Assembly (NCBI RefSeq): GCF_902713615.1
Contig: NC_052146.1
Span: 87,587,626-87,651,625 of the forward strand
Length of the DNA: 64,000 bases
Source of the DNA: Scyliorhinus canicula
Lineage: Eukaryota
Direction of reading: 5' to 3'
The position numbers and the translations under genes were made by a program. The notes under the pieces are model-generated. The model saw only the letters and a list, made by a program, of their open reading frames with translations. It did no database searches and was not told the DNA's origin. This document shows, piece by piece, positions 1 to 43,591 of this stretch (position 1 is its first letter; every line of letters starts with the position of its first letter).

Positions 1-496
1 ATTTCCATTCTACAGGAGGCCAGAGTAGCTAAAATACATCCAGACAAATTGATGAGTGATGGAACTGGTTAGCAGCATCTTGGCTGGACTCCAAGATCAG
101 TGAAAGTGCTCCAGACCACTGGCCAGGAAACAAGCCACAAGTAAATAACCTGCCACACTAAATTTGAAAGGATTATTATTTTCAGCAGTAAACAAAACAG
201 GGCTAAATGTTTAACAGAACCATTAGAGAACCATACCCTGGAACATAAAAACTGAAGTATTGCTTCAAGGAATGCATTAAGTTAATGTTATTAATATTCT
301 TTTCAGCTAATGCTTTCTAGAAGCTGTTTCCAGCAGGTTTCACTTCATTGCATTCACCACATACAACATTGATCTGTAATATCATTCCTCTTGCATCCAG
401 TTCATTGACAACTAACATCATGAAGAATTGTTCCATGGCTTGTTCAGATCTGCTTCTTATGGTTTGTGTCATGCTGGCAATGCAGAAGCCACACCA

Positions 497-535
497 TCAT
501 TCTGGAGTTCCCAATCGTTGTTTCAGTATCAAATA
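497..535 (-). CDS. IQCC: IQCC last coding exon (YLILKQRLGTPE*)
   Basis: Acceptor ttttaatag; continues the conserved motif; TGA at 499-497. Confidence 0.88.
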   Translation of the reverse strand, partial: YLILKQRLGTPE

Positions 536-15500: not shown

Positions 15501-18500
15501 ATTCTTAACATCCCACGCCCAAAACACTCATTCCAGGTTAAGCAGCGCTTCACTTGCATCTCTTCCAATTTGGTCTACTGCATTCGCTGCTCCCAATGTG
15601 GTCTCCTCTATATTGGAGAGACCAAACACAGACTGGGTGATCGCTTTGCTGAGCATCTTCGGTCTGTGCACATTCAGGACCCTGACCTTCCCATTGCTTG
15701 CCGTTTCAACAAAAGACCTTGCTCCCAGGCCCACATGTCTGTCCTTGGCCTGCTGCAATGTTCCAGTGAAGCTCAACGCAAACTGGAGGAACAACATCTC
15801 ATCTTCCAGTTAGGCACACTACAGTCTTCCAGTCTCAACATCGAATTCAACAACTTCAGATGATTAGTTCTAGCCCACCGCGACCCATTTGTTTTCATCC
15901 CATTTAATTTTAACTGTCTTTTACCATTTCTTTATTTCTTGTCTTTCTTAATATATATTAACCCCCCCATCTTATCCACCTTTCCTTACCCTTTCTCCTC
16001 TTTGCTTCCCCCTTCCCCTCCCCCCACATCTACAGTTCACCCACTGATGTTAGTTTCTCTGCTGTTTGGCCTTTCACATCTTTTGTTCTCTCTGGGACTG
16101 CCATTAGCACTCTTTTCCCTTGGTTTCTATGGCCATTAGCACACGGTTTCCCTGGGTTTCTGTGGCTATGACTCATCTTTCATTCTCACTCCACAACATA
16201 AATATTTCCCACTTTCTCTCTGTTAGCTTTGACAAAGAGTCATCGGACTCGAAACGTTAGCTCTTTTCTCTCCCTACAGATGCTGCCAGACCTGCTGAGA
16301 TTTTCCAGCATTTTCTCTTTCATTTCAGAATCCAGAATCCGCCCTAATTTGTTTTTATCCAGTGTACAAGAGTAAGTAGATTTCACTGCAATTATATAGG
16401 ACATTGGTGCGACCATACGTTGAATATTATAAAGTTTTAATCTGCATACAGCAACTTGCATTTACACAGCATCTTTAATGGAAGAAAACATCCAAAGGTA
16501 CACCCAAAAAAGGAAATACTTATTTAGGGAGGGTGCATTGAAAAGTTAACTCGATTGATTCTTGGGGAGAGGAAATTGTCCAACGAGGAGACATCAAGTA
16601 AAATAGGCCTATTTACCTAGAGTTTAAAGAATGTAAAGGTATTTTTTATTCATTCATGGGACGTGGGTGTCACAGGCTGTGCTAGTATTTATTGCCCATC
16701 ACTAATTACCCTTGAAGGAGCAGGTAAGAATCAACCACATTGCTGTGGGTCTGGAGTCACATGTAGGCCAGACCAGGTAAGGAGGGCAGTCCAAAGATGT
16801 GGTTAGATGAATTGGCCATGCTAAATTACCCTTAGTGTCCAAAATTGCTCTTGGTGTTGGGTGGGGTTACTGGGTTATGGGGATAGGGTGGAGGTGTGGA
16901 CTTGGGTAGGGTGCTCTTTCCAAGACCCGGTGCAGACTCAATGGGCCAAATGGCCTCCTTCTGCACTGTAAATTTAGATTTAGAACAGTACAGCACAGAA
17001 CAGGCCCTTCGGCCCTCGATGTTGTGCCGAGCAATGATCACCCTACTCAAACTCACGTATCCACCCTATACCCGTAACCCAACAACTCCCCCTTAACCTT
17101 ACTTTTTAGGACACTACGGGCAATTTAGCATGGCCAATCCACCTAACCCGCACATCTTTGGACTGTGGGAGGAAACCGGAGCACCCGGAGGAAACCCACG
17201 CACACACGGGGAGGACGTGCAGACTCCGCACAGAGAGTGACCCAGCCGGGAACCGAACCTGGGACCCTGGAGCTGTGAAGCATTGATGCTAACCATGCTA
17301 ACCACTATGCTACCGTGCTGCCCCTATTCTATGAAATTCTATGATTTCCTTCCCTAAAGGACATTAGTGAACCAGATGGGTTTTTACGACAATCGACAAT
17401 GGTTTCATGGTCATCATTAGACTTTTAACTCCAGATTTTTAATGAATGCAAATGATTGCATTGAAAGATATTGAAATGCTTGACAGGGTAGATGCTGGAA
17501 GGACGGTGTACAACTGGAGATTACAGTCGGAGTAAAGAATTTCAAAATAAAAAGGGGGAAATCACATTGCTGGGAGTGCACTACAAGCCCCAAACAGCCA
17601 GGGACAGATAGGAGATCAGATACATCTCAGAAGTGTAAAAACAATAGTGTAATAATAGAATGTCACTTCAACTGTCCCAATATTAATTGGCATAGTCAGG
17701 GTGTGAAAGGCTTAGAGGAGCTGGAGTTCTTGGTGCATCCAGGACAGCTTTTTGAGCCAGCACGTAGAAAGTCCTACAGGAGAGGAGCCGGTACTTTATC
17801 TAGTTTTTAAAAATAACGTCGAGCAGGTAGTATAAGTATTAGTGGGGGAGCATTTGGGTGATAATGATCATAACTCAGTAAGATTTACAGTAGTTATGGA
17901 AAAGGACAAAGATGGACCAGAAATGAAGGGGTTCTAAATGGGGGAAGGCCGATTTTAATAAAATATGACAGGCTTTTATTAGTTGTAGCATAGAATTCAA
18001 GAGCAGGGATGTTATGATGGAGCTGTGTAAAACCCTCATTGGACCACAGCTAAAGTACTGTGTATAATTCTGGTCACCAAACTACAGGAAGGATGTGATT
18101 GCACGAGAAAGAGTGTAGAGGAGATTCACCAGGATATTGCCTGGGCTGGAGCAATTTAGTTATGAGAGGCTGGTTAAACTAGGGTTGCTCTCCTTAAGAG
18201 CAGAGAAGGGAGACCTGATTGAAGTGTACAGAATTATGAAAGACATAGATAGGGTAGGAAGGAAGAAACTATTCCCCTTAGCAGAGTAGTAAATAGCCAG
18301 GAGGCATAGATTCAAGGTAACCAGGCAAGAAATTTGAGGAAAAACCTTTTAACCCAAAAAGTGATAGGAATCTGGAACTCATAGCCTGAGGTGTTAGAGG
18401 CATTAAGCATTTAAGCAGCATTTAGATGGGCACTCGAAATACCCTAGGATGTAACGCTACAGACCAAGTACTGGAAAATGGGTTCAGAATAGACAGCTGC

Positions 18501-19402
18501 TTGATGAGCGACACCTCTTTCTATGCTGTGAAACTTTGTCCCCAGGTGATCATTTAAGACAGAGAACAAAAAATGTCTTTATTCACAGAGTTATTTGGGA
18601 AATGTTACCACAGAGTTGTTGGATTTTTAAAAAAATCAATAGATTTTTTTTAGATTCAAGAGATATTTCTGTACATATCGAGTGGAGGCAGATGATCGAT
18701 CAACCAGATTTTTTTAAATGACAGAGCAGGTTTGAAGGGCAAATGCCTGAATCTATTTCTTGTGATCATTAACACAAATGCCTCCGTGGAAAATTATTTT
18801 ACCCAGCACATTCCAAATACTACAGAAGCTACTTCAGTTCCACCTGTGCTCAAATATTATCAATGCAAAATGAGTGTGTGCATGAGCAAGCTTGTGACTA
18901 AGAGCAGGAAAAGGCCATTCAACCCCTCAAATCTGTTCTATCTTTTAAAAAGACCATAGTTGATGTGTACATAGCCTGGACTCCAATTTCCTTCCCGAGC
19001 CCACCATCCTTAGACTCCCTTATCAATCTATGTAATCAGCTTTTAAAAATATGCAATGGGGGAAGAGAATTCCAGACTCACGACCCTCAAAGTGAGAAAA
19101 AAGTTATCTTCCACTTCAATCATTCAGCTGCAAAATCTATAACTGAAAAACAAAACTCAAAAATGCAGAATTTGTACTTTCAACCACTGAAGATTGTTGG
19201 ATAATTGCCATGGTAACCGCCTTACTGCTTCACCAACTGTTAGAAAATATATTCCAAACGTTTAACAGTCGATTTCAAACAGTGTCAGCTGGTAAAGTTA
19301 CAATTTCCAGTGTGAATGGAGAAACTCTACACTAACTAGCAGCAAGTTGCTGAGACAAACCTGCAGGACACACACTCCCTGAGGGAAGTCGTCCGCCGCC
19401 AT
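497..19402 (-). CDS. IQCC: IQ domain-containing protein C, spliced CDS join(19402-19361, 6526-6383, 2218-1828, 1120-999, 535-497), 245 aa
   Basis: Five GT-AG exons join in frame (42+144+391+122+39=738 nt). The N-terminus MAADDFPQGVCVLQ|AYVRGYLVRKKFHRLRQDYESIVKEIE carries the IQ motif. The C-terminal block [28 protein letters not shown] matches the conserved IQCC motif (human, from memory: [24 protein letters not shown]). Confidence 0.93.
636..945 (-). mobile_element. HE1-type V-SINE with CR1 tail (other copies 14652-14992+, 16981-17324-, 20113-20230+, 36338-36637-, 45313-45640-, 47550-47730-, 58170-58370+, 60519-60827+)
   Basis: tRNA-derived head, V-domain GCGTGGGTTTCCTCCGGGTGCTCCGGTTTCCTCCCACAGTCCAAAGA, tail CTGCACTGTAAATTCTATG. 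Confidence 0.9.
999..1120 (-). CDS. IQCC: IQCC coding exon 4
   Basis: Acceptor caattttccag, donor AAT|GTAAGT; encodes (E)[40 protein letters not shown]. Confidence 0.93.
1189..1374 (+). mobile_element. tRNA-headed SINE without V-domain, same Rex1-like tail (second copy 19938-20103 minus)
   Basis: GGGGCTGTTTAGCAC..GGTTCGATTCCC head joined to GTGGCGACTAGGGGCTTTTCACAGTAACTTCAT...GTGACAATAA(TTTCA)n. Confidence 0.75.
1828..2218 (-). CDS. IQCC: IQCC coding exon 3 (acidic, poorly conserved linker)
   Basis: Acceptor ttcttctttgacag, donor G|GTAAAG; 391 nt open frame overlapping ORF 1784..2200; phases fit exons 2 and 4. Confidence 0.85.
3137..3359 (-). mobile_element. Short (~220 bp) V-SINE with A-rich tail
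   Basis: 15-bp TSD AGATGTAGCAAACAT (3122-3136, 3360-3374). Other copies ~1530-1762, 5680-5895, 12481-12614, 13870-14061, 27491-27715, 38954-39177, 55085-55230, 57380-57605. Confidence 0.9.
3375..4169 (+). mobile_element. Solo LTR related to 11393-12263 (5' boundary uncertain)
   Basis: Shares CCAATTAATTGGGACCA, GGCCATTGTTCCTCTGAC and the GAGCAACA end with the other LTR. Confidence 0.7.
4415..5185 (-). mobile_element. CR1 (HER1-type) LINE 3' fragment
   Basis: LYKALVRIHLEYCIRFWSPYLRKD; 3' tail ending in TTCTATG repeats. Confidence 0.9.
6383..6526 (-). CDS. IQCC: IQCC coding exon 2
   Basis: Acceptor ctctttttctag, donor CAG|GTATGT; 144 nt encoding AYVRGYLVRKKFHRLRQDYESIVKEIEEGLDLLEWDGKVLLRPKFKNQ. 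Confidence 0.93.
6628..6859 (-). mobile_element. tRNA-headed SINE ending in (TTTACC)n
   Basis: GGGGTCGGTTTAGCTCAGTTGG A box, GGGTTCAAG B box, tail GGACTATGGTGACTTTACCTTTTACC. Confidence 0.75.
7003..10560 (-). mobile_element. Stack of at least four CR1 (HER1-type) fragments in the same orientation, with a Penelope piece at ~9860-10110
   Basis: RT motifs GVPQGSVLGP, KFADDTK, LVRPHLEYC; separate 3' tails at ~7003, ~7043 and ~7542. Confidence 0.9.
9858..10110 (+). mobile_element. Penelope-like (second family) C-terminal fragment
   Basis: RRITEQKLIAKYRMHEYSLNRNLGFMLHY resembles the end of a Penelope GIY-YIG domain. Confidence 0.6.
11175..12650 (+). mobile_element. tRNA-headed SINE sharing 5' and 3' ends with the family B LINE; interrupted by a Penelope tail, a solo LTR and a short V-SINE
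   Basis: CTAGTAATCCAGAGACCCAG..GGGTTCAAATC head, body GACTCCAG..GCCACTCAGTT joined directly to the CAAGGGCAATTAGGGATGGGCAAT tail. Confidence 0.75.
11393..12263 (-). mobile_element. Solo LTR (871 bp)
   Basis: TGTAGCC...GAGCAACA termini on the minus strand, 4-bp TSD CTTT, internal TATAAAA and AATAAA. Confidence 0.9.
12730..13350 (-). mobile_element. Family B LINE 3' fragment
   Basis: Homologous to 46650-47320 (CCTGACTTGGAAATATATC, same tail). Confidence 0.8.
13432..13735 (+). mobile_element. V-SINE variant with a Rex1-like tail ending in (ATT)n (3' piece also at 55310-55443 minus)
   Basis: V-domain followed by GTGGCGACTAGGGGCTTTTCACAGTAA...CTACTTGTGACACTAATAAA. Confidence 0.75.
14508..15075 (+). 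mobile_element. Short V-SINE with a full HE1 nested inside
   Basis: 16-bp TSD AAAGACAGGTAAAGTG (14492-14507, 15076-15091); HE1 at 14652-14992. Confidence 0.9.
15317..16360 (+). mobile_element. 5'-truncated Penelope-like element (GIY-YIG endonuclease + 3' region)
   Basis: NLVYCIRCSQCGLLYIGETKHRLGDRFAEH; 14-bp TSD AGTGTACAAGAGTA at 15303-15316 and 16361-16374. Confidence 0.92.
16225..16262 (+). ncRNA. Minimal type I hammerhead-ribozyme-like motif in the Penelope 3' region
   Basis: AGCT-TTGACAA-A-GAGTC-ATCG-GACTC-GAAAC-GTT-AGCT: stem I AGCT/AGCT, stem II GAGTC/GACTC, GAAA, palindromic stem III. Confidence 0.6.
16645..17445 (-). mobile_element. Second copy of the family B-related SINE, interrupted by two tail-to-tail HE1 copies (16790-16975 plus, 16981-17324 minus)
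   Basis: Host sequence GGTAAGGAGGGCAG|ATTTCCTTCCCTAAAGGACATTAGTGAACC is continuous across the insert. Confidence 0.75.
17460..18760 (+). mobile_element. Decayed CR1 fragments (EN and C-terminal parts)
   Basis: Degenerate homology to CR1 (GTACTGTGTATAATTCTGGTCACC, GGAGACCTGATTGAAGTGTAC). Confidence 0.7.
19361..19402 (-). CDS. IQCC: IQCC coding exon 1 (MAADDFPQGVCVLQ)
   Basis: ATG in AAGATGG context at 19402; donor CAG|GTTTGT; phase 0 into exon 2, completing the IQ motif LQ|AYVRGYLVR. Confidence 0.88.
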
Positions 19403-19577
19403 CTTAGACCGGCACTGAGGACATGACGCAATTCCTTAACAGGAAGTAACGTACTCTATCCTTGTGACCAATCACCGCCGGCCGCCCGATAATTGACAGT
19501 CCGATTAACCAATCAGAGGTATGAAGGAAACCAGGCGGCGCCTGGTGCCGCGCATGCGCGGACAGACAGGCTGAGTG
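19396..19577. promoter_or_regulatory. CpG-rich bidirectional promoter shared by IQCC and ZBTB8OS
   Basis: 175 bp between divergent ATGs. YY1-like CCGCCATCTT 19396-19405 (overlapping the IQCC ATG), ETS core CAGGAAGT ~19440, CCAAT boxes 19468 and 19509, palindromic NRF1 site GCGCATGCGC 19550-19559; no TATA box seen. Confidence 0.85.
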
Positions 19578-19659
19578 ATGGACGACAGGGAGTATGATCT
19601 GAGCGCGGCTCAGAAAGCGGTGAAAGCCAAATATCCCCCCGTCAGTAAGAAATACCAAT
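19578..19659 (+). CDS. ZBTB8OS: ZBTB8OS coding exon 1
   Basis: ATG at 19578, KAKYPPV motif, donor T|GTAGGT (phase 1). Confidence 0.92.
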
Positions 19660-22600
19660 GTAGGTGAATCTCCGTCAACTATTGGCCATTCAGAACCTGG
19701 TTAATGTCGGAACTGAGGGGGTGGCAGGGCCTGTGCCGCACTGAAGACGTTTACATTTTGCTTGACCTGGAGAAGATGTTGTAGGGGTAGGGGTATTGGG
19801 TGGGGGGAGAAAGTGTTGGGGGATATGGTTGGAAGGAAGAGAGTGTTGGGGATATGCGGGGAGGAGGAAGAGAGTGTTGGGTAATATGGGGGGGGGGGGG
19901 GGTGTGTGTGGAGGAGGAAGTGAGTGTTGATGAAAATATCACTTATTGTTGCAAATAGGCTTCGATGAAGTTACTGTGAAAAGCCCCTAGTCGCCACATT
20001 CCGATACCTGTTCAGGGATGCCAGTACAGGAATTGAACCCGCGCTGCTGCCTTGTTCTGCATTACAAGCCAGCTGTTTAGCCTGTTGTGCTAAACCAGCC
20101 CCTGCAGTATTGGGGGATAGCACAGTAGTTAGCACTGTTGCTTCAGGATCCCAGGTTCAATTCCCGGCTTGGGTCAATATCTGTGCGGAGTCTGCACGTT
20201 CTCCCTGTGAGTGCGTGGGTTTCCTCCCAAGGTGGGGGGGGGGGGGGGGGTGGGTGTTGGTGGGGGGGGGGGGGGTGGTGTGTTGGAGGGGGGTGGGATG
20301 TTGGTGGGGGGGAGGGGGGGGTGGGTGTTGGTGGGGGGGAGGGGGAGGTGGGTGTCGGTGGGGGGGGAGGGGGGGGTGGGGTGTCGGTGGGGGGGGGAGG
20401 AGGAGGTGGGTGTCGGTGGGGGGGGGAGGAGGAGGTGGGTGTCGGTGGGGGGGAGGGGAGGTGGGTGTCGGGGTGGGGGGGAGGAGGAGGTGGGTGTCGG
20501 TGGGGGGGGGAGGAGGAGGTGGGTGTCGGTGGGGGGGGGAGGAGGAGGAGGGGGTGTCGGTGGGGGGGGGAGGAGGAGGTGGGTGTCGGTGGGGGGGGGG
20601 AGAGGAGGTGGGTGGTGGGGGGGGGAGAGGAGGAGGAGGTGGGTGGTGGGGGGGTGGGAGAGAGGAGGAGGGGGTGGTGGGGGGGTGGGAGAGAGGAGGA
20701 GGTGGGTGTTGGGGGGGGGAGGAGGAGGTGGTGTTTGGGGGGGGAGGAGGAGGAGGTGTTGGGGGGGAGGAGGAGGGGGTGTGGGGGGAGGAGGAGGTGG
20801 GTGTGGGGGGGGGGAGGAGGGGTGGGGGAGGGGTGGTGGGGGGGGGAGGAGGTGGGTGTGGTGGGGGAGGGGGAGGGGAGGTGGGTGTCGGTGGGGGGGG
20901 GGAGGAGGAGGTGGGTGTGTGGGGGGGGGAGGAGGGGGTGTGGTGGTGGGGGGAGGAGGAGGTGGGTGTTGGTGGGGGGGGGGAGGAGGTGGGGGTGGGG
21001 GGGGAGGAGGTGGGTGTGGGGGGGGAGGAGGAGGAGGGGGTGGTGGGGGGGGAGGAGGAGGTGGGTGTGGGGGGGGGGAGAGGAGGAGGTGGGTGGGGGG
21101 GGGAGAGGAGGAGGTGGGTGTTGGGGGGGGAGGAGGAGGTGGGTGTTGGGGGGGGGAGGAGGTGGGTGTTGGGGGGGAGGAGGTGGGTGGGGGGGAGGGG
21201 TTGGTGGGGGNNNNNNNNNNNNNNNNNNNNNNNNNNNNNNNNNNNNNNNNNNNNNNNNNNNNNNNNNNNNNNNNNNNNNNNNNNNNNNNNNNNNNNNNNN
21301 NNNNNNNNNNNNNNNNNNNNNNNNNNNNNNNNNNNNNNNNNNNNNNNNNNNNNNNNNNNNNNNNNNNNNNNNNNNNNNNNNNNNNNNNNNNNNNNNNNNN
21401 NNNNNNNNNNNNNNNNNNNNNNNNNNNNNNNNNNNNNNNNNNNNNNNNNNNNNNNNNNNNNNNNNNNNNNNNNNNNNNNNNNNNNNNNNNNNNNNNNNNN
21501 NNNNNNNNNNNNNNNNNNNNNNNNNNNNNNNNNNNNNNNNNNNNNNNNNNNNNNNNNNNNNNNNNNNNNNNNNNNNNNNNNNNNNNNNNNNNNNNNNNNN
21601 NNNNNNNNNNNNNNNNNNNNNNNNNNNNNNNNNNNNNNNNNNNNNNNNNNNNNNNNNNNNNNNNNNNNNNNNNNNNNNNNNNNNNNNNNNNNNNNNNNNN
21701 NNNNNNNNNNATAATGTCAGTGCTCCAGATTGGCAACTGGCATTTCACACCACCCACAGACTGGAATTCCCAATCTTGTGTCAACTACCCAAAGAAAATT
21801 GATGCTATAGCTGCAGCAGATGTATCTGGTGGCAGAAATTCTAGTCTAATATGTCAACAAATGCTGTAAAATACAAACATTGGTGGCAAATGAACAGGAG
21901 TCTAATAGTCTTGCAGACCTCTTAAACTTCCTCTCTCAGACACCCCAGAGACTTGAATTTAAAAAGCTGTTCAGTGTGTTACATAACTCGAGCATTCTGA
22001 GGATCTTGATTTGCATTGCAATGCCTTCAAAGCCCTGACACGATAATCTTTGTGATTTTATTGCCAGAGGTATCTGGTGTGTAAAGATCAAGCAATAGTG
22101 AACAAGAAAGAACATAGGAATTAGGAGCAGAAATAGGCAATTCAGCCTTTCGAGCCTGTTCGCCATTCAATCAGATCATGCCTGATCTCTTCTTGGTCTC
22201 AAATCCATGTCCCTACCTGTTCCCCATATCCCTTTAACTGGTTTTTTAAAATCATAAATATATCTATCTCCTTTTTGAAACCATTTAATGATTCAGTCTC
22301 CACCGCACTATCGGGCAGCGTGTTCCACAAATTCACCACCCTCTGCCAGAAGTAGTTTCTCCTCATCTCAGTTCTAAATCTACCACCTCTCAACCTATAT
22401 CTGTGACCCCTCGTTCTAGATTGTCCCACAAGGGGGAATATTTGGTCTACGTTTATCTTTATCGATTTCTTTTAGTATTTTAAATACCTCGATCAGATCC
22501 CCTCTCATTCTTCTAAACTCCAGCGAGTAGAAGCCCAAACTGTTAATCTCTTCTCTTGTCAACCCTTTCATCCCCGGAATCAATCTGGTGAATCTCCTCT

Positions 22601-25600
22601 GAACTGCTACCAATGCTACCACATCCCTCCTCAAATAAGGAGACCAAAACTGGACACAATACTGCATATGTGGTGTCACCAACACCCTATACAATTGCAA
22701 CAACACTTCTTTTATACTCTAGTCCTTTTTGCGATAAACGCTAAAATTCCATTTGCCTTGTTTATTACATCCTGTGCTTGCATGCTGATGTTCTGCGATT
22801 CATGAATAAAAACACCCAGATCTCTCTGCCCAGACGCATTTGGAATCTGCTTTCCATGTAGATAATCAGAACTATACTATTTTTTCGGCCAAAATGGACA
22901 ACCAAAGTGGGTGACCTCACAAGGAATTTGATTAAATAGATAAAAGCAAATTACTGCGGATGCTGGAATCTGAAACAAGAACAGAAAATGCGGGACAATC
23001 TCAACAGATCTGACAGCATCTGTGGAGAGAGAACAGAGCTAACTTTACTAACATAATTAAATAGTCCCAAATCAACTTCTATAACTATGAGTAATGATGT
23101 TACTCAGAACACAATTTAAATGAATAGGCATGATTTCTCTTTCTGACAGATATCCACTGTGAACTGACAGCTGAATCTCAGTCTTTGAATAAGTTTATAC
23201 CTGCAACAAAATTGAGAAATACTGGAAGCACAGAACAGATCAAACCAGTATCTGTGGCAGACAAGTTAATGTTTCAGGTGTAAGCTCTGTGCTAGAACAT
23301 TGAGTTCCATAATCTACATGTTGTTTTGCCTGCCTTGAGGGAGAGCATCATTTGACCTTGCCAAGTGACCAGAATTCAGTATTTTCTCTAGTTCTTTGTC
23401 CATGGTTCTGGATGTACTTGTATGATATAAAATATAATACCAAACATAATTCTAACCCAAGTTTCATATTTTTGTTTTGTCTATTTTCTTTTAGGGCATG
23501 ACATGTTGTCTCTGCTCTATAATTTCATGAACGAATGGCTCTATCAATTCAGCGCAGAAATGTTTTTCATTCCAAGGGTCAGTGAATTGTTTAAAAATGG
23601 AAATAAGAAAGATGTGAATTGACATTAGAATTGAACAAATTTTTTTTTAAAAATTATTTTTATTAAGATTTTCAAAAACATATCAAAAACATAAAATAAC
23701 AGCAAGAAAACCGTATTAACAACACCAAAAAGAAATAACACAATAACCCCCAAAACCAACCCCGCCCCCCCCAGTAACTACAAAAGAAGAAATAGATAAG
23801 CACCCGGCATATTCAATAAACACATATACACATTCCCCCCCCCACTCCCTTTTCCAATTTGATGAACCCCGCCATATCATTGATCCAGGCCTCCACGCTT
23901 GGGGGCCTCACATCCTTCCATTGAAGAAAAATCCTCCGCCGGGCTACTAGGGACGCCCTCCACGGATCCACCCCTCCCATCTGGTCCATAAACCCCCTCA
24001 ACATCTTAGCCGCCGCGGGCCTCCTGCCCGTTCTGGACATGGATCAATCCAATGGGGGATCCAGCACCGTGTTAAAGTCCCCCCCCCCACCCCCCCCCCC
24101 CCCAGTATCAAGACCCCCGTCTCTAGATCCGGAATGCGGCCCAACATGCGCCGCATAAAACCCGCATCGTCCCAATTTGGGGCATAGACATTCACCAGCT
24201 CCACCCGCTCCCCTTGCAACTTGCCGCTCACCATCACATACCTCCCTCCACTGTCAGCCACCACCTTTGATGCCTCAAACGACACCCTTTTTCCCACCAG
24301 AATCGGCACCCCCTGATTTTTTGCATCCAGCCCCGAATGAAACACCTGGCGTACCCAGCCCTTCCTCAGTCTAACCTGGTCCGCCACCTTCGGGTGCGTC
24401 TCCTGGAGCATATCCACGTCCGCCTTCGGGTGCGTAAACACCCGAGCACGTTTAACCGGCCCATTTAGCCCCCTCACATTCCAAGTTATCAGCCGGATAA
24501 GAAGGCTCTCTGCCTCCCTCCCCTGCTGACTAGCCATAACCCGTCCCCTGCCCGGCTAGCGTCCCTTGCTCGGCCCGTTCCCCACAGCGGCAAACACCCA
24601 CACCAGCCCCCCCCCTGCAGACTCCAGCTCCTTCCTGGCCATTTCAGCAGCAACCCGGTACCCCCCCCCCCCCTTCCAGGCTAGGACCTCTCCCAGCCGC
24701 GTAACTCCCACCATAGCACTCCCATGAGCCAGATAACTTCTGCTGACCCCTGCAGCTCCTGCCACCCCTCCGACCCCTCCCAACATGGGGCTGCTCCTCC
24801 TCCCCCAGACCCATCAGCAGATCCTCCTCTTCCTCCCCCTCCCGCTCTTGCGCGGGAAAAAAGCCCGCACTTCTCAGCTCAGACCCCGCCCCCATCCACC
24901 CTCAGCGCGGGAAACAGAAGAAAAGCCCGCGCTTTCCCTCTGCCCGGCCCCGGGAAAAAAGACAGCACCCCACCCACCCTAGAAACAACACACAACCAGC
25001 TTGAAACAGCATGAAACAGCATAAAACAGAGACCCTTCCCACCAAAAGTTAACACAGTTCTTTACAAATCCCCGACCCTCAGTCAGAGTCCAACTTCACG
25101 GCCTGCAAAAAGGCCAACGCCTCCTCCGGGGACTCAAAATAAAAGTGCCGGTCCTTGTAGGTGACCCACAGACGTGCCGGCTGTAACATGCCAAACTTCA
25201 CACTCTTTCTGTGGAGCACCGCCTTCGTCCGGTTGTACCCGGCCCTCCGCTTGGCCACCTCCGCACTCCAGTCCTGGTAGATCCGCACTACGGTGTTCTC
25301 CCACTTGCTGCTCCACTCCTTCTTGGCCCACTTAAACACGCACTCTCGGTCAATGAACCGGTGGAACCGCACCAGCACCGCCCGTCGGTTTGGGCCTCCT
25401 GGCCAGTATTCTGTGGGCCCACTCCAGCTCCAGGGGCCCCTGGAAGGACCCAGCTCCCATCAGCGAGTTCAACAAAACGACCACATAGACCCCCAGGTCT
25501 GACCCTTCCAGCCCCTCCATGAGGCCCAGGTTCCGCAAATTCTTCCGCCTTGACCGGTTCTCCATCTCCTCGAACCGCTCCTGCCACTTCTTGTGGAGCG

Positions 25601-28600
25601 CCTCGTGCATCTCCACCTTTACCGCGAGGGCTGCGGCCTCATCCTCTCTTTCAGAGGCTTGTTGTCGGAACTCCCGGATCTCCACCCCCTGGGCTGTCTG
25701 CGTCGCCAGCAGCTTGTCCATATTAGCCTTCAGCGAGGCGAGTCCAGCAGCTCCACTTTGAGCTCCTGAAAACAGCGCTGGAGAGTCTCCTGCTGCACCT
25801 GCGCCCACTGCCTCCATTCCTCGAGGCCTCCACCGGCCGGCATCTTGATTCTCTTCCCCCGCTTTTCTTAGGCGCTGCCACCGCTATTCTGCTGGCCCCG
25901 CTCCTGGTCCAGACCATAGACCACTGGGGATCTGCTGCAGACACCTTACCATGTTGGGAACCGTCGAGCAAGTACCGTTGGGGGCCCTTAAAAGAGCCCA
26001 AAAGTCCGTTCCTGGCGGGAGCTGCCGAACGTGCGGCTTAGGTCCACATAGCCGCAACCGGAAGTCCAGAATTGAACAAATAAAGCACTGTTTATACAGC
26101 GGGTAGGAATTATTTGGAAAGTACCTGTGAAGGGTGCTGGAAAAGAAATGCATTACTACAAATTTGTATATCCTGCTTGTTTTAAACATGCCTGAAAGGG
26201 TTCCAATAGAGGCTGATGAAATTATATTATGTCAAGTCGAGCTTAGGTTTTACATGTAATGGTGCCAGCAGGCTTGGCCGCTATGTCTCATGCTGCTGAT
26301 GACATGTTTACAATAGCTAGAGATTGTGTTCCAGAGGGCGTGATGATAATCTAGTGCCTCCACGAAGATTACCAATATAATAACATGCTTTCCAAGGAAA
26401 CTGATCTTGCTCATCCAATAGTTCAGCTATTGAAGAGGATGCTTAAATAAATTAAAAGTACACAAATGGATGTTAAGTGAGGATGAAACTAGGCTCAGGG
26501 AGGTGCCCTGCTGTTAATGATTAAGGCTAATTTTAAATACACCCCCCCCCCACGCATACACACACACACACGCGTAGATTGGATTTTTCATTCAGTTTTA
26601 CATCAGTTCAGTTTTGATTTTGTTGGAGAGTAAAATCAGACAGGGTCTAAAATGGGTGTCTGTTTATCATCCCATCATGTGGGTTTGGTTGAAACTACCC
26701 CTTAACTTCCTGCATTCACATAAAAAATAGATACTTGGTACTGTAAGATACCTTAGCAATGAGAGCGTGTTCTTGATTGCCCTTGAGAAGATGGTAATGA
26801 GTTGCCTTCTTGAACTGCTGCGGTTCATATAGTGTAAATACACCCACTGTGCAGTGAGGGAGGGAGTTCCAGGATTTTGACCCAGCGACAGTGGGGATAT
26901 ATTTCCAAATCAGGATGGTGAGTGACGTGTAGGACAACTTCCAGGTGATGTTCCCAAGTGTCTGCTGCCCTTATCCTTCTTTATGGTAGCAGTCATGGGT
27001 TTGGAAGGTGCTGCCTAAGGATGCTCAAGTGAGCTCATGCAGTGCATCTTGTAGGTGGTGTACACAGGTTTTGCGGAGTCAGGAGGTGAGTTACTCGCCA
27101 CAGAATTTCTAGCCTCTGATCTTCTTTTGTAGCCACAGGATTTATATGGCTAGTCTAGTTCAGTTTCTGGTCAATGATAACCCCAGGATGTTGAGCGTGG
27201 GCGATTCAGTGATGCCATTGAATGTCAAGAGGCTATGGTTAGATCCTCTCTTGTTGGAGGTGGTCATTTCCCGGTATATTTATGGTGCAAATGTTATTTG
27301 CAACATCAGCCCGAGTCTAGATATTATCCAAATCTTGCTGCATTTGGGCCGGGACTGCTTCAGTATCTGAGGAGTTGCAAATGTTGCTGAATGTTGTGTA
27401 ATCATCAACGAACGTCCCCAGTTCTGACCTTATGATGGATGGAAGGTGATTGATGAACAGCTGAAGAAGGTTGGGCCTAGGATGCTAACCCTTGTAAAAG
27501 TAAATTTAGATTGCCCAATTCGTTTTTTCCATTTAAGGGGTAATTTAGCGTGGCCAATCGACAAACCTGCACATCTTTTGGTTGTGGGGGCAAAACCCAT
27601 GCAAACACTGGGAGAATGCAAACTCCACACGGACAGCGACCCAGAGCCGGGTTGGAACCTGGGACCTCGGCGCCATGAGGCAGCAGTGCTAATCATTACT
27701 CCACCGTGCTGCCCTGCCTAGGACGCTAACCCGAGGAACTCCTGCAGTGACATCCTGGAATTGATGATTGACCTCAAACCACAACCATCCTTTGTGCCAG
27801 GTATGACTCCCAACCAACAGAATTTTCCCATTGATTCCAGTTTTGCTAGGGATTCTTGATGCCACACTTGATCAAATGCGGTCTTGATATTAAGGGCAGT
27901 CACTTTCACCTTACCTCTGGAGTTTAGCTCTTTTGTCCATGTTTGAACCAAAGCTGTGAGGTCAGGAGCTGAGGGACCTTGACTTAACCCAAACTGAGCA
28001 TCTGAGCAGGTTATTGCTGAGGAAGTGATGCTTGATGGCACCGTTTTTTTTTGATAAACCATTTTAATGAGGTATTTTTTGGCATTGTAAAACAGTAAAA
28101 TTACAGAACGTGAAAACAAAAGGATTGTACAATAAACAAAGTACACAGTGCAATTGCCCTAACCTGTCCTACTCAGATCTGACTAATTGACCCCCAATAC
28201 TACATTCCCCTAACCCCCGCCCCCTTGTTGACGATTAATTCTCTGCAAAGAAGTCAATTAATGGTTGCCACCTCCGGGCGAACCCTAACACCGACCCTCT
28301 CAAGGCTAACTTGATTTTCTCCAAGCCCAGGAAACCCGCCATGTCTGACAGCCAGGCTTTCGACTTCGGGGGCTTTGACTCCCTCCAAGCTAGAAGTATC
28401 CGTCTCCGGGCTACCAGGGAAGCAAAGGCCAAAACGTCGGCCTCTTTCTCCCCCTGGACGTCCAGGGCCTCTAAAACCCCAAAAATCGCCACCTCCGTAC
28501 CCATTGCCACCCTTATGTTCAATACTCTAGGCATGACGTCCTCGAACCCCTGCCAGTAGTTCCTAAGTTTTGGACACGCCCAAAACATGTGGACATGGTC

Positions 28601-29935
28601 TGCCGGTCCTCCCAGACACTTTACACACCTGTCCTCTACACCGAAGAATCTGCTCATCCGGGACACTGTCATGTGGGCCCAGTGGACGACCTTAAATTGA
28701 ATCAGGCTGAGCCTGGCACATGTTGCACTCCCATTAACCCTGCTCAGCGCGTCCGCCCACAGGCTCTCCCCAATCTCCCCTCACAACTCCTCCTCCCATT
28801 TATGCCTCAGTTCCTCAGTCTGCGTCTCCTCCGCCCCTATGAGCTCCTTGTAAATATCCGAGACACTTCACTCCCCCACCCATCCTCTGGACACTACCCT
28901 ATCTTGGATCCCCCTTAGTGGCAAGAGTGGAAAAGATGGCACCTGCCTGCACAAAAAGTCCCGCACCTGAATATACCGGAATTCATTCCCCTTCGTCAAA
29001 CCAAACTTGTCCTCCAGTGCCCTCAAGCCAGGGAAGCTCCCTTCCAAGAACAAATCTCCCATCCGCTCAATCCCCGCCCTCCGCTATACCCGATACCCCC
29101 CCCCCCCCCCCCGTCCATCCTCCCCGGAGCAAACCGATGGTTGTCACATATTGGGGACCAGACTGATGCTCCCACATGCCTCCTCCACTGTCCCCAGATC
29201 CGAAGGGCCGCCACCACTACAGGACTGATGGAAAAGCGCGCCGGCGGGAACGGCAGAGGCGCCGTCACCAACGCCCCCAGACTAGTGCCCCTACACGAGG
29301 CGGCCTCCATCCACTCCCCAGTCGACCCCCCCCCCCCCCCCCGCCAACCACTTCCTTATCATGGCTATGTTAGCCGCCCAATAATAGTTGCTGAAATTCG
29401 GCAGTGGAAGCCCCTGCTTCCACCGGTTCCACTCGAGCATCACCCTCTTTACTCACGGGGACTTGCCCGTCAATACAAAGCCCAAAATGATCTTGCTTAT
29501 CCTCTTAAAAAAGGAACGTGGAATGATAATGGGGAGACACTGGAACACGAATAGGAACCTCGGGAGGACTATCATTTTAACTGTCTGAACTCTCCCAGCT
29601 AACGACAACGGGAATGGATCCCACCACCGGAACTCCCCTCGCATTTTATCTACCAGCCGGGACAGGTTCAGCTTGTGTAGTCGACCCCATTCCCGCGTCA
29701 CTTGTATTCCCAGGTACCTGAAACTGTCCCCCACTAGCCGGAACACAGCTCCCTCAACCGGTCCCCTTGGCCCCTCTCCTGGACTACAAACATTTCATTT
29801 TTTGTCATATTCAATTTATACCCCGAAAACCGGCCGAATTCCCCCAAGGTCGCCATGATTCCGTCCATCCCCGCCATCGGGTCTGAAACGTACAAAAGCA
29901 GGTCATCTGCATACAATGAAACCCTATGCTCCATC

Positions 29936-29978
<43 letters not shown>

Positions 29979-32900
29979 CCCGAACCAGCCCCTTCCAACC
30001 CTCTGAAGCCCTCAGAGCAATTGCCAGCAGCTCTATAGCTAGCGCAAACAGCAGCGGGGAAAGGCGGTACAGTCTGAAATGAGGAAACCCACCCCAAATC
30101 CAAACTGTTCCAGCACCTCCCATAAGTAGTCCCACTCTACCCGGTCAAATGCCTTCTCCGCATCCATAGCCACCACTACCTCCACCTCCTTTCCCTCCGG
30201 GGGCATCATGATCACATTGAGCCATTTTCTTTTATTCGCCCCCAGTTGCCTACCTTTAACGAACCCTGTTTGGTCCTCCCTAATAACACTCTACGCACAA
30301 TCCTCAATCCTAGTGACAAAAGCTTTGCCAGCAGTTTGGCATCCACGTTAAGAAGGGAGATCGGCCTATAAGACCCACACAACCCCGGATTCTTGTCCCG
30401 TTTTAAAATCAAAGAGATGGTAGCCTGCGACATCATCTGGGGAAGCACCCCTCTGTCCCTTGCCTCATTGAAAACCTTGACCAGCAGCGGCCCCAATATC
30501 CCGGAGAACCTGACTGCATAGCCTTTAAGCCCTCTATAATCTCAACTCTGATCGGGGCGCTCAGCCCTTCTACTAGCTCCCTGCCCACTCTTGGGAATGT
30601 CAGGCCGTCTAAGAAGCGTCTCATCCTCTCCAGCCCCGCGGGGGGACTCCAAGCTATAAAGTTTGCAATAAAAGTCCTTGAAAGCTCTGTTCACACCCGC
30701 CGCATCCCCAACCAAGTTACCGCCTCCATCCACCACTTTACCTATTGCCCTAGCCGCCTCCCTCTTTCTGAGCTGATGAGCCAGCATCCTGCTGGCTTTC
30801 TGTCCATGCTCATATAACGCACTCCTCGCCTTTCTGAGCTGCTCTACTGCCTTGCCCTTGGTCAACACCCCAAACTCTGCCTGCAGCCTCCTCCGTTCCC
30901 TCAAGAGCTCCGCACTCGGGGTTCCCACATCCTCCTGTCAATCTGCAGAATCTCTGCTAACAGTCGGTCCGTTTCTGCCCTGTCTGTCTTTTCCCTGTGA
31001 GCCCGGATTTAAATCAGCTCCCCTCTCACCACTGCCACCACCTCAAACTGCACCCGTTTGTTCACCAGAATCGCGACTCCCCTGGTCTTAGCGTCTAGCT
31101 GGAGTACTGAGTGGAGTACCTGATTAACCCAGCTCTTCCTCAACCTGATCTGGTCCACTTCCTTCAGGTGCGTCTCCTGCAACATTATCACGTCCGCCTT
31201 TAAAGCCCTAAGATGCACGAACACTTTAGCCCTGTTCACCGGCCCATTTAGCCCTCTAACATTCCACGTAACCAGCCTAGTTGGGTTGCACCATGCCCCA
31301 CCCCCCCCCCCCCTTTTCCGGTCAGCCATCCCCTTTCCTGGGCCTGCCCCCAGCCCGTGCCTCTGTAGCCCCGCCTCCTGGCAGTGCCCATCCCTGACCT
31401 CTTCTCCACTTCTAAAATCAAATCCCTCCCTCGTCAGCCAAGCACCCCCCCCCCCCCCCACCCCCCAGCAACAACACTCTGTAACCTAACCCCATCCCTA
31501 ATCTGATTGTATACACACCCCCCCCCCCCCCCCACTGCGCTCCCACAGACTAGCTCTCCCAGCTAGCCTAGTGGCCCACAGCTCCGGCGCCAGCACGTCT
31601 CCCACCTATTGTTGCCTACCTGCCCTCCCCCGCCCCTCAAAACCATTGCCCTCATCAACCCAGCCCCGACGGACGCCCCCTTTAAGAAACAGACGCCACC
31701 CAAAGTCAGCATAAAGAAAAACAAAGCCAAACTCTCGCCATAATACAAATCAAAGTAATACCTCTCAAATAAAATAGTCAAAAATCCCCTCACAACACAG
31801 AAAACCCACCGAAATCGAATAATTTTTTAACTACTTTCCCCTTATTAAACAAAACACAATTATCGAAGAGAAAAGCCAAGAACGAAAACAAACAAACGAA
31901 TAAATCAGTGCAAACAGCGTTTGAAACGAGCAGGAAAATCAGTTTCTCAAACTTAGAGCAGAATGTTCTCAAGTTGGCACCAGTCCTTTCTTCCTGGCAA
32001 ACTCCATAGCATCCTCGGCCGACTCAAGGTAGTGATGTTGGTCCTCATACGTAACCCAAAGTCGCGCCGGATACAACAGACCGAACTTAACCTGCTTCTT
32101 GAACAGGATCGACTTGACTTGATTAAAGCCTGCCCTCCTCTTGGCCACCTCCACGCTTAGATCTTGGTACACCCGCAAAATGCTGTTGTCCTATTTACAG
32201 CTCCATGTGCGTTTGGTCCATTGGAGAATACGCTCCTTATCCAGGTACCTATGGAACCTGACCACCATTGCCCAAGGGGGAGTCTCCCTGCTGCGGCTTC
32301 CTCGCCAGCGCTCTGTGCGCCCGATCCACCTCCAATGGTCCGGGGGAAAGCCCCATCTCCAAGCAGCTTCTGGAACATTTTCGCCACAAACTCCCTGGGA
32401 TCAGCCCCTCCGCCCCCTCCGGGAGGCCGACAATCCTTAGGTTCTGCCTATGGGACCTGTTCTCCAAATCCTCTTACCTGTTCCAGCAGTCATTTTTGCT
32501 GGTCCCTCAGCATCCCCACCTCCATTTCCACCGCCATCTGGTGTTACTCTTGTTCTGCTAGCGCCTTCTCCGGTTTCTGGATCGCCCTGTCCTGGGCATC
32601 TAGCATCCGCTCCATCCTCTCCACTGTTTCCTTAAATCGGGTCCAGACATTCCCGATTCTGTCTAGCGAAGCCTTCCCGGATAACCTGCATCAGCTCCTC
32701 CGTTGGTGGTTGAGTCGAAGCCCCAAGGGTCTGGACACCGGCCATCTTGTCCGCTGCTGCAGCCAACACCCAGCTTGACCCTGACTTTTTGTTTCTTCCC
32801 TTTCGATCTCTTTGGGTTCTCTGTTCCATAAACCAATATATACACTGAACACTTGTTCACCGTTTCTTCAAATCCAGTGCGTAAAAGAGCAAACAAAGTC

Positions 32901-40089: not shown

Positions 40090-43000
40090 TTTTTTTATTC
40101 ATTTACGGGATGTGAGTATCGTGGTTAGCCCAGCATTTATTGCCCAGCCCTAACTGCTCTTCAGAAGGTGGTGGTGAGTTATCTTCTTGAACCGATGCAG
40201 TCCTTCAGGTGTAGGTACACCCGCTGTGCTGTTAGGGAGGGAGTTCCAGATGTTGCCCAAGCAACAGCGAAGGAATGGTGATATATTTCCAAGTCAGGGT
40301 GGTGAATGACTTGGAGGGGAATCTCTAGTTGGTGGGGTTCCCAGGTATCTGCTGCTCTTGTTCTTCTGGATGGTAGTGGTCGTGGGTTCAGAAGGTGCTG
40401 TTTGAGGAACCTTGGTGAGTTACTGCAGTACATCTTGTAACGGCTGCATGGTTCACCAGTGGTGGAGGGTTTTAATGTCTGTGGGAGGGGAAGCAACCAA
40501 GCCGGCTGCTTTGTCCTGGATGGTGTTGAGCTTATGTGTTGTTGGAGCTGCACTCATCCAGACAAGCAGTGAGCATTCCATTACACTCCTGACTTGTGCC
40601 TTGTAGATTGTGGACAGGCTTTGGGGGGGTCAGGAGGTGAGTTGCTCACCATAGGATTCCACCCTTTAACCTGCCCTAGTAGCCACAGTATTAATGTGGC
40701 TAATCCAATTCAGTTTCTGATCAATGGTAACCCCCTGGATGTTGATTGTGGGAGATTCAGCGATGGTAATGTCATTAAATGTTATTGGGCAGTGGTTAGA
40801 TCCTGTCTTATGGAGACGGTCATTGCCTGGCATTTGTGTGCTGTGAATGTAACTTGCCATTTGTCAGCCCAAGGCTGGATATTGTCCAGGTCTTGCTGCA
40901 TTGGGACATGGACCTATCAGACATTATCTGAGAAGTTTTGAATGGTGCTGAACATTGTGCAGTCATCTGAAAACATCCCCACTTCTGACCTTATGATAGA
41001 AGGGAGGTCATTGATGAAGCAGCTGAAGATGGTTGGGCCTAGGATGCTACCCTGAGGAACTCCTGATTGAACAAGCATCTGAAAGAAAGATGGCGCCGGA
41101 GCGAGGCGATTTCCTGCAAGCTGTGCCCAGAATACCCTCTAATTCTATCTTTTACACTCATTCTATGCTTCTAAAACTTCATTCTAACTCTTTTAAACTC
41201 TCTAACAATGTTCTTATTCAATTACTTACAGCTTTAGACATTACATTCTGCAGTCTCCTTCCCTATGTACGGTCGGCATTGTTTGTACAGCATGCAAGAA
41301 ACAATACTTTTCACTGTATACTAATACATGTGACAATAATAAATCAAATTACATCAAATCCTGCAGTGATGTCCTGGAGCTGAGTTGATTAACCTCCAAC
41401 TACCACAACCATCTTTCGTTGTGCCAGGTATGACTCCAACCAACAGTTTTCCCCCCGATTCCCATTGACTCCAGTTTAGCTAAGGCTCCTTGATGCCATA
41501 CTCTGTCAAATGGTGTCAAGGGCAGTCACTCCCCTCACCTCTGGCATTCAGTTCTTTTGTCCATGTTTGAACCAAGGCTGTAATGAGGTCAGGAGCTGAG
41601 TGACCCTGGCGGAACTCAAACTGAGCCTCCATGAGCAGGATATTGCTGCTTAAGTGCCGCTTGATAGCACTGTCGATGACTCCTTCCATCACCTTGAAGG
41701 ACAGCAGACTGATAGGGTGGTAATTGGCTGGGTTGGATTTGTCCTGTTTCTTGTGTAGACACAGCTCGGCAATTTTCCATATTGCTGGGTAGATGCCAGT
41801 GTTATCGCTGTACTGGAACAACTTGGCTAGGGGTGCAGCAAGTTCTGGAGCACAAGTCTAAAGTACTATTGCCGTGATATTGTCAAGAGCCCATAGCCTT
41901 TGAAGTATCCAGGGCCTTCAGCTTGATGTCACATGGAGTGAATCAAATTGGCTGAAGACTGACATTTGTGGTGCTGGGGACCTCCGGAGGAGACACAGAT
42001 AGATCATCCACTTGGCACTTTCTGGCTGAAGATTGTTGCGATTGCCTCCGCCTTGTCTTTTGCACATAACTGCAGAGCTCCTCCATCATTGAGGATGGGG
42101 ATATTTGTAGAGCCTCCTCCTCCAGTGAGTTGTTTAATTGTCCACCACCATTCATGGCTGGATGTGGCAGGACTACAGAGCTTAGATCTGATGTGTTTGT
42201 TGTGGAATCGCTTAGCTCTGTCTATTACTTGCTGTTTATGCTGTTTGGCACACAAATAGTCCTGTGTTGTAGCTTCAACTGGTTGACAACTCATTTTCCG
42301 GTATGCCTGATGTTGCTCCTGGCATGCCCTCCTGCATGCGTCATTGAACCAGGGTTGATCCCCTGGCTTGGTGGTAATGGTAGAGTGGGGATATGCTGGG
42401 CCATGAGGTTGCAGATTGTGGTTGAATACAATTCTGCTGCTGCTGATGGTCCACAGCACCTCATGGATGCCCAGTCTTGAGTTGCTAGATCTGTTTGAAG
42501 TCTATCCCATTTAGCTCGGTGGAAATGCCATACAACACGATGGAAGGAATCTTCAATCTGAAGATGGGTCTTTGTCTCCACAAGGACTATGCGATGGTCA
42601 CTTCTGCAGCAGGCAGATTGGTGAGGATGAGGTGAATTATGTTTTTCCCTCTTGTTGGTTCCCTCGTCACCTGCTGCAGTCCCAGTCTAGCAGCTATGTC
42701 CTTTACGACCTGGCAAGCTCGGTCTGTGGTGGTACTACTGAGCCACTCTTGATGATGGACATTGAAGTACCCCCACCCAGAACATATTCTGTGCCCTTGC
42801 CATCCTCAGTGCTTCCTCCAAGTGGTGTTCAACATGGAGGAGTACTGATTCATCAGCTGATGGTGGTTGGTACGTGGTAATCAGCAGGAGGTTTCCTTGC
42901 CCATGTTTAACCTGAAGCCATGAGACTTCATGCGGTCCAGAGTCAATGTTGTGGACTCCCAGGGCAACTCCCTCCTGACTATATTCCACTGTGCCACCAC

Positions 43001-43591
43001 CTCTGCTGGGTCTGTCCTGCTGGTGAGACAGGACATACCCAGGAATGCTGATGGTGGTGTCTGGGACATTGTCTGTAAGGCATGATTCTGTGAGTATGAC
43101 TATGCCTGGCTGTGAGCTAGTCTGTGAGACAGCTCTCCCAACTTTGGCATAAGCCCCCAGATGTTAGTAAGGAGGACTTAGCAGGGTAGACGGGGCTGGG
43201 TTTCCTTTGTCGTTTCCGGTACCTGGTCTGATGCCGGGAGGTCCATCTGGTTTTGTTCCTTTTTTTGTGTTTTCATAGCAGTTGAATACAACTGGGTGGC
43301 ATGCTAGGCAATTTCAGAGGGCATTTAAGAGTCAACAACACTGCTGTTAGTCTGGAGTCACATATAGGCAAGACCAGGTAAGGAATTTCCTTCCCTGACA
43401 TTAGTGAACCAGATGGGTTTTTATGACAATCGGCCTTGGTTTCATGGTCATCATTAGATTTTTAATTCCAGATATATTTTATTGAGTTTAAATTCCATCA
43501 CCTGCTGGGATGGGATTCAAACCCAGGTCTCCAGATCATTATCCTGGGTCTCTGGTTTACTAGTCCAGCAACAATACCACTATGCCACTGC
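40090..43591 (-). mobile_element. Near full-length decayed single-ORF CR1/L2-group LINE (family B) with tRNA-like 5' head
   Basis: APE endonuclease start VLLTNIWGLMPKLGELSHRL (~43177) and RT motifs (YHPISLL, AQFEFRQGHSAPDLITALVQTW); 3' tail GGGCAATAAATGCTGG...ATGAAT; A box 43587-43577, B box 43522-43513. Confidence 0.88.
41066..41358 (+). mobile_element. Short non-autonomous Rex1/Babar-like retroelement inserted in the family B LINE
   Basis: AAGATGGCGCCGG 5' part; tail CTTTTCACTGTATACTAATACATGTGACAATAATAAA(TCAAA)n; TCCTG duplicated at the junctions; same tail at 5570-5632 (-). Clade assignment is from memory of the tail motif. Confidence 0.55.

Follow-up and report, generated by a model that had tools for sequence, protein, structure and literature searches.

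Does a long interspersed element (LINE) of cartilaginous fishes carry, as an inherited leader, the head and body of a short interspersed element (SINE), and could the tRNA-type promoter in such a head drive transcription of the whole element through RNA polymerase III (Pol III)? Both questions are raised by a locus of Scyliorhinus canicula (contig NC_052146.1, positions 87,587,626 to 87,651,625), a stretch of 64,000 nucleotides (nt) that we call the window and whose coordinates are used throughout. SINE/LINE pairs are normally described as sharing their 3' tail only. An initial annotation of the locus had proposed an autonomous LINE transcribed by Pol III, with a tRNA-like head, no ORF1 and a sense strand purged of runs of four T (T4; T4+ when longer runs are included). 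With regard to the first question, the element at 43591-40090 is in our judgement likely to be a full-length, no longer active member of a LINE family found in cartilaginous fishes, belonging to the CR1/L2 group, that lacks ORF1, encodes an endonuclease (EN) and a reverse transcriptase (RT), and has inherited the head and body of its partner SINE as a 5' leader. The element and its parts are the following.

43591 to 40090, minus strand, 3,502 nt: full-length decayed LINE with a single open reading frame (ORF) for endonuclease/reverse transcriptase
43512 to 43594, minus strand: tRNA-derived head, 5' end of the repeat unit, judged by its A box and B-box-like motif
43287 to 43472, minus strand: conserved body of the SINE, similar to a Deu domain and collinear with free copies in the window
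43178 to 43286, minus strand: linker from the SINE-like leader to the endonuclease, with the likely ORF start, mutated in the present copy
42500 to 43177, minus strand: APE-type endonuclease decayed by stops and frameshifts, recognised by VLLTNIWGL, Pfam and phmmer matches to EN-RT proteins
41356 to 41857, minus strand: N-terminal part of the reverse transcriptase (Pfam RVT_1 on 41519-41857; tblastn with full-length EN-RT proteins)
41066 to 41355, minus strand: foreign 290-bp repeat, a private insertion absent from sister copies, which holds the T4 run at 41173-41176
40490 to 41065, minus strand: C-terminal part of the reverse transcriptase, with the FADD site and a private T4 run at 40970-40973 (Pfam RVT_1, E 6e-7, on 40920-41138)
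40090 to 40167, minus strand: 3' tail common to LINE and SINE, ending in ATGAATGAATAAAAAAA, from the alignment of LINE 3' ends and SINE tails
17453-17344, 16783-16725, 12368-12432 and 11182-11326: free SINE pieces (head/body), located with blastn and MAFFT

The minus strand opens at 43591 with GCAGTGGCATAGTGGT, and this 5' end bears the two boxes, A and B, of a type-2 Pol III promoter, where the initial annotation had placed them. The A box, TGGCATAGTGG, is at 43587-43577, and the B-box-like motif, GGGTTTGAATCCC, at 43524-43512; the latter contains GGTTTGAATCC and is one CpG-to-TpG change away from GGTTCGA. The Rfam tRNA model scores 15.6 bits on 43594-43517 (E 2.3) against a threshold of 29, ARAGORN called no tRNA at the head of the element, and the 81-nt head folds without a cloverleaf (z -1.65). 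The description of the head as tRNA-like holds in that it is part of the LINE unit and tRNA-derived, but not as a call of a tRNA, its score being below the threshold for one. Judged by its motifs, the head is derived from a tRNA like the heads of SINEs, rather than being a tRNA gene. Past 43595 the read depth of the family drops from about 22,000 to about 2.

The first ~305 nt of the element are collinear with a tRNA-derived SINE of Deu type that occurs free in the window, and element positions 29-272 were matched to its free pieces by blastn and MAFFT over the 64 kb. At the other end, when the 3' ends of four LINE copies (this one and three sisters) were aligned to two free SINE tails, the last ~78 nt of the LINE proved to be the SINE tail. 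In the free copies the conserved body joins the tail directly, i.e., the SINE corresponds to the element minus about positions 306-3425, and the read aligner finds joints that skip about 3.2 kb. Since both the leader and the 3' tail are common to them, LINE and SINE appear to be the long and the short form of a single lineage. The body is presumably a Deu domain, to judge by the match to the SacSINE1 coordinates in PMC5499810. The layout agrees with that published for the shark SacSINE1, described together with LmeSINE1 among the Deu-SINEs (Luchetti et al. 2017, PMC5499810), which has a tRNA-derived head with A and B boxes, a body at ~124-258 and a tail homologous to the LINE L2-2_CM, and which is present in sharks including the whale shark. 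In that description the tail was the only part found in common with the LINE; the present LINE has, in addition, a leader made of the head and body.

That this leader is inherited by the LINE family is suggested first by its structure. The head segment lacks the SINE tail and passes via a ~110-nt linker into the ORF, and nothing similar to a SINE was found beyond the LINE 3' end at the locus. A chance insertion of a SINE was rejected on these two grounds and by the recurrence of the junction, and the insertion of the LINE into a SINE was rejected as well, the sequence beyond the A run being unrelated to the SINE tail. The second line of evidence comes from relatives found with phmmer, by searching a protein library with the N-terminal endonuclease piece, several of which are gene models of the whale shark, Rhincodon typus. 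Two of them (P0020 and P0151) translate the 3' end of the body and the linker before entering the EN start. Three (P0020, P0027 and P0151) start at or contain an ATGAAAC within the linker, which in P0027 is the same start as in P0020. A fourth (P0002) begins with MMSFREGN, the translated body core, joined to the EN start across a deletion; these 8 residues are 87.5% identical to the free SINE at 17373-17344. The models are only 55-80% identical to copy 43591-40090, and are therefore different loci. Whether the head stands next to the ORF elsewhere too had been put forward as a check, and the adjacency does recur in these four models and, less cleanly, in the metagenome contig L003 (JGI 3300026616), which contains element positions 8-55 (head) and 171-625 (body through endonuclease) in collinear order.

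Word depths from the read contigs of two species point in the same direction. At site 43301, in the last part of the body, the word depth was 8,458 (124 contigs), and at 43180, the LINE 5' end, it was equal (8,401; 121 contigs). The SINE core reached 54,000-107,000, and the depth of the LINE decreased from 3' to 5' from about 150,000-200,000 down to 11,000-30,000; the pattern was broadly similar in the second species, organism B. The abundant SINE copies depart from the element at 43317-43319 and continue into tail sequence. In a template-switch chimera one would expect a small RNA or SINE that is complete down to its 3' end, joined at a point specific to the locus; here the SINE tail is missing and the linker is shared with the whale-shark models. 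Taken together, these observations speak for a SINE-like leader that is inherited, with a much higher likelihood than for a single isolated event.

Several observations weigh against this reading. In the window only one copy reaches the 5' end; all other LINE copies are 5'-truncated and start at element position 861 or later, so that the window alone cannot settle the inheritance of the head. No contig among the pieces listed bridges 43180 to 43320 directly, which makes the support from read depth indirect. The whale-shark support consists of predicted protein models, and in L003 about 70 nt of a different shark repeat stand in place of the linker and the contig has the look of a mosaic, for which reason we give it less weight. 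No clear target-site duplication bracketing the composite of head and LINE was found, and the assignments to the L2 clade and to Deu are taken from the literature. The search for related loci of the metagenome contigs found none, exact-pattern scans of metagenome, viral and genome collections gave no further copies, and a protein search restricted to the region returned only the query. The contigs L001, L002 and L004 are 5'-truncated or too short to show the junction.

Some side observations concern the same sequences. A second tRNA-derived SINE of another family, starting with GGGGCAGCACGGTAGCATAGTGG, is found at 17340-16800 (minus strand), inserted in a free copy of the Deu-type SINE, and the ~70 nt that replace the linker of L003 match the sequence just downstream of it (around 16980-16900). 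Within the metagenome contig L003, the stretch 1221-1790 also resembles shark repeats; this contig shares its sample of origin with L004, and the LINE family is present in both. About 0.39 of the exact 31-mers from the 5' region of the decayed copy (window positions 42700-43600) are found in the runs labelled organism B, which suggests an orthologous insertion or a very close relative in a second species.

The coding part has the order of a single polypeptide, EN followed by RT, as tblastn with EN-RT proteins of 940-1195 amino acids tiles 2.2 kb in order; among the stop-free pieces, Pfam Exo_endo_phos_2 matched at 42590-42805 (E 1e-3). The copy (43591-40090, minus strand) is inactive, with numerous stops and frameshifts, and contigs of two species skip its 290-bp insertion, 41060 being joined to 41359 in 16-20 of them. 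Element position 415 (43177 in the window) is where the endonuclease motif VLLTNIWGL begins, which leaves no space for an ORF1, exactly as had been proposed. A stop codon lies just upstream of the motif and the start codon is lost or ambiguous, in agreement with the earlier remark that no start could be resolved in this decayed copy. The whale-shark models place an ATGAAAC start ~80 nt 5' of VLLTNIWGL, implying a leader of ~335 nt, almost entirely homologous to the SINE. The lack of ORF1 is not in itself a sign of unusual biology, since the active zebrafish L2 element ZfL2-2 also lacks ORF1p (PMC3880073). ORF1-less L2 LINEs of this kind resemble the present element in their single ORF for EN-RT, in the "stringent" 3' tail that the RT recognises and in a partner SINE with which the tail is shared, but no leader derived from a SINE or tRNA is described for them in PMC3880073 or PMC4176376. 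Within the CR1/L2 group the clade is probably L2, on the basis of the published match of the SacSINE1 tail to L2-2_CM (PMC5499810).

We now turn to the second question, transcription. The head would be recopied in every full-length retrotransposition, and if it is recopied in full-length progeny, transcription should start at or 5' of its first base. The head is most likely the internal promoter of the element or the determinant of its start site, and the shared tail would let an L2-type reverse transcriptase copy the RNA of either the LINE or the SINE. A tRNA-type promoter with A and B boxes starts transcription at or before the first base of the head, and by analogy this start would be the best argument for Pol III. 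Two RNA data sets cover the element, with a coverage that tracks copy number and has a 3' bias, and no pile-up of starts at 43591 was found in either of them. The strand bias of one run (X22, oligo-dT library) gave no readable polarity.

The other argument raised for Pol III is the scarcity of T4 runs. On the sense strand of copy 43591-40090 there are two, one at the FADD site (40970-40973) and one in the private insertion (41173-41176). The initial annotation had counted one in ~3.2 kb, which is right for the LINE sequence proper but misses the second, in the 290-bp foreign insertion. Its view of the run at the FADD site as specific to this copy was confirmed, as the sisters read TTTGCA, TTTGCT or TTCGTT at this place. 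Over the 6.0 kb of homologous blocks of seven sister copies we found a single T4 run, at about 33878 in the split copy, the only one for which a run had been reported. The inferred ancestral sequence of the LINE would have contained no T4 at all on its sense strand, the sole homologous T4 of the present copy being private. In contrast, the CR1-like LINE fragment at 7541-9560 has 12 T4+ runs on its sense strand (more than ten had been claimed). This fragment, also on the minus strand, has an RVT_1 match at 8877-9488, and its T4+ runs fit its codon usage.

How much of this scarcity goes beyond composition depends on the reference chosen. The family has 2 T4 runs and 3 TTTT words in 8.9 kb of the window, against 21.6 words expected from base composition and 14.2 from dinucleotides; given the observed counts of TTT and TT, 5.3 would be expected against the 3 observed. 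The A runs of the family are as expected and the window as a whole is enriched in T4. For copy 43591-40090 alone, one T4 was observed against 2.9 expected from dinucleotide shuffles (P 0.18) and 2.62 from synonymous-codon shuffles (P 0.21). When the copies of the family were pooled, one was observed against 8.8 expected from codon shuffles, a value reached by 0/500 shuffles, although its significance is overstated because the copies overlap and share ancestry. For the inferred ancestor the figures are 0 against about 3 expected (roughly P 0.03-0.07), and for the CR1-like LINE 8 against 8.66. Once dinucleotides or codon usage are kept, the depletion is borderline. The contrast with the CR1-like LINE, which had been offered as evidence for Pol III, does not serve as such, most of it being due to which codons and amino acids are used: under synonymous shuffling, T4 is expected about 1.2 times per kb in the element and 5.5 times per kb in CR1. 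The family uses TTC over TTT (34 to 17) and CTN over TTR (155 to 28), and phenylalanine makes up 2.4% of its codons, compared to 4.4% in CR1. This bias could reflect selection against T runs, or plain composition.

Among the explanations that compete for these data, one that comes fairly close to probable is that the LINE has captured a SINE-derived 5' untranslated region (UTR), as happened repeatedly with the 5' UTR of mammalian L1, with a polymerase II (Pol II) promoter within or near the leader and the scarcity of T as a side effect of a coding strand rich in A and C. Most of the T4 difference is indeed explained by composition and codon usage, and an AATAAA is found at the extreme 3' end of the element, upstream of the A run. 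LINE mRNAs, moreover, need to be translated. ORF1-less L2 elements have also been active under Pol II promoters in assays (PMC3880073). However, this explanation has to assume that a Pol II promoter, as yet uncharacterised, initiates precisely where the tRNA-type head has its first base, and it leaves the residual deficit of T4 in the ancestor unexplained, weak as this deficit is.

The explanation put forward initially, in which transcription by Pol III begins at the head with its A and B boxes and covers all 3.5 kb of the element while selection against terminators keeps the sense strand free of T4, is possible but on the doubtful side. It has in its favour that the head lies right at the 5' terminus and in register with the head of the SINE, as an internal type-2 promoter requires; to this are added the T4-free ancestor, the shortfall against base composition with no depletion of A runs, the pooled codon shuffles and the absence of any deficit in the CR1 of the same window. 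Against it are the lack of significance in the single copy, the agreement of TTTT with expectation once TTT is given, the codon preferences and rare phenylalanine that explain most of the contrast with CR1, the dependence among the pooled copies and the missing start signal at 43591. Furthermore, transcripts made by Pol III are as a rule short, lack a cap and are translated poorly. A softer variant would remove this last difficulty, because the Pol III RNA would serve only as a template for reverse transcription, mobilised in trans via the shared tail like a SINE, and the protein would come from other transcripts. R2 uses a self-cleaving ribozyme and relies on the promoter of its target gene, unlike the present element, which would carry an internal promoter of its own. 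Its co-transcription with rRNA is nevertheless a precedent for LINE RNA that does not derive from its own Pol II promoter (PMC5786205). The full proposal, i.e., an autonomous LINE with a tRNA-type internal Pol III promoter, transcribed over about 3.5 kb at least as an RT template and with the SINE as its ORF-less deletion form, we regard as unlikely.

That an unrelated SINE lies beside the LINE 5' end by chance, through a single chimera made by template switching or through an error of assembly is very improbable and largely refuted. The single 5'-complete copy, the missing target-site duplication and the occurrence of chimeras of small RNAs and LINEs (U6-L1, cited in PMC5499810) as a known by-product of reverse transcription would allow it. 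Against it, the SINE-like part lacks the tail of a SINE and nothing left of a SINE is seen beyond the LINE, linker and junction recur in independent whale-shark models, head and LINE occur together in L003, and in two species the linker equals the LINE 5' end in copy number. In U6-L1 chimeras, as here, a sequence derived from a small RNA is joined 5' of a LINE; unlike here, their junctions are unique and the small RNA is complete, whereas the present junction is common to several loci.

The nearest parallel for the sharing of both ends is found in the bipartite SINEs (Bov-tA/Bov-B and those derived from RTE and Vingi), in which both ends are common to SINE and LINE and the SINE may be viewed as a LINE that has lost its interior (PMC5786205). 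They differ in that the small-RNA head belongs to the SINE alone, while here the LINE, of the CR1/L2 group, has the tRNA-type head. In a systematic survey of Repbase, RTE and Vingi LINEs were the only ones whose 5' UTRs were found to have given rise to SINE bodies (Kojima 2018, PMC5786205). In the literature we found no account of a LINE carrying a SINE head (the repeat libraries Repbase and Dfam were outside this comparison), and it is not a certainty that this is the first description of a SINE-headed LINE.

An inherited leader of this kind makes two models testable, namely that the SINEs arose by internal deletion of a headed LINE or that the LINE captured the promoter of a SINE. It also allows the question whether an autonomous retrotransposon can be driven by Pol III to be put to a natural element. 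Where the Deu domain comes from has been called unknown (PMC5786205); if transcription by Pol III proved true, the leader of an L2-type LINE would be a candidate origin or carrier of this deeply conserved domain. On the practical side, repeat annotators are likely to split such copies into "SINE + L2", and the numbers of full-length LINEs in shark genomes would be misstated.

Other features of the window were also recorded. An intact tRNA-Gln (CTG) at 49834-49905 (minus strand), called by ARAGORN and with 68.3 bits in Rfam, is the only true tRNA gene. A G-rich minisatellite of ~1 kb (20233-21200, period about 25-29, 33-37 copies) has stop-free ORFs of more than 530 amino acids in several frames and on both strands, and may form G-quadruplexes. 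Finally, an ORF at 15243-15863 (plus strand) has a weak match to a GIY-YIG nuclease (E 8e-4) and may be a fragment of a Penelope-like element.

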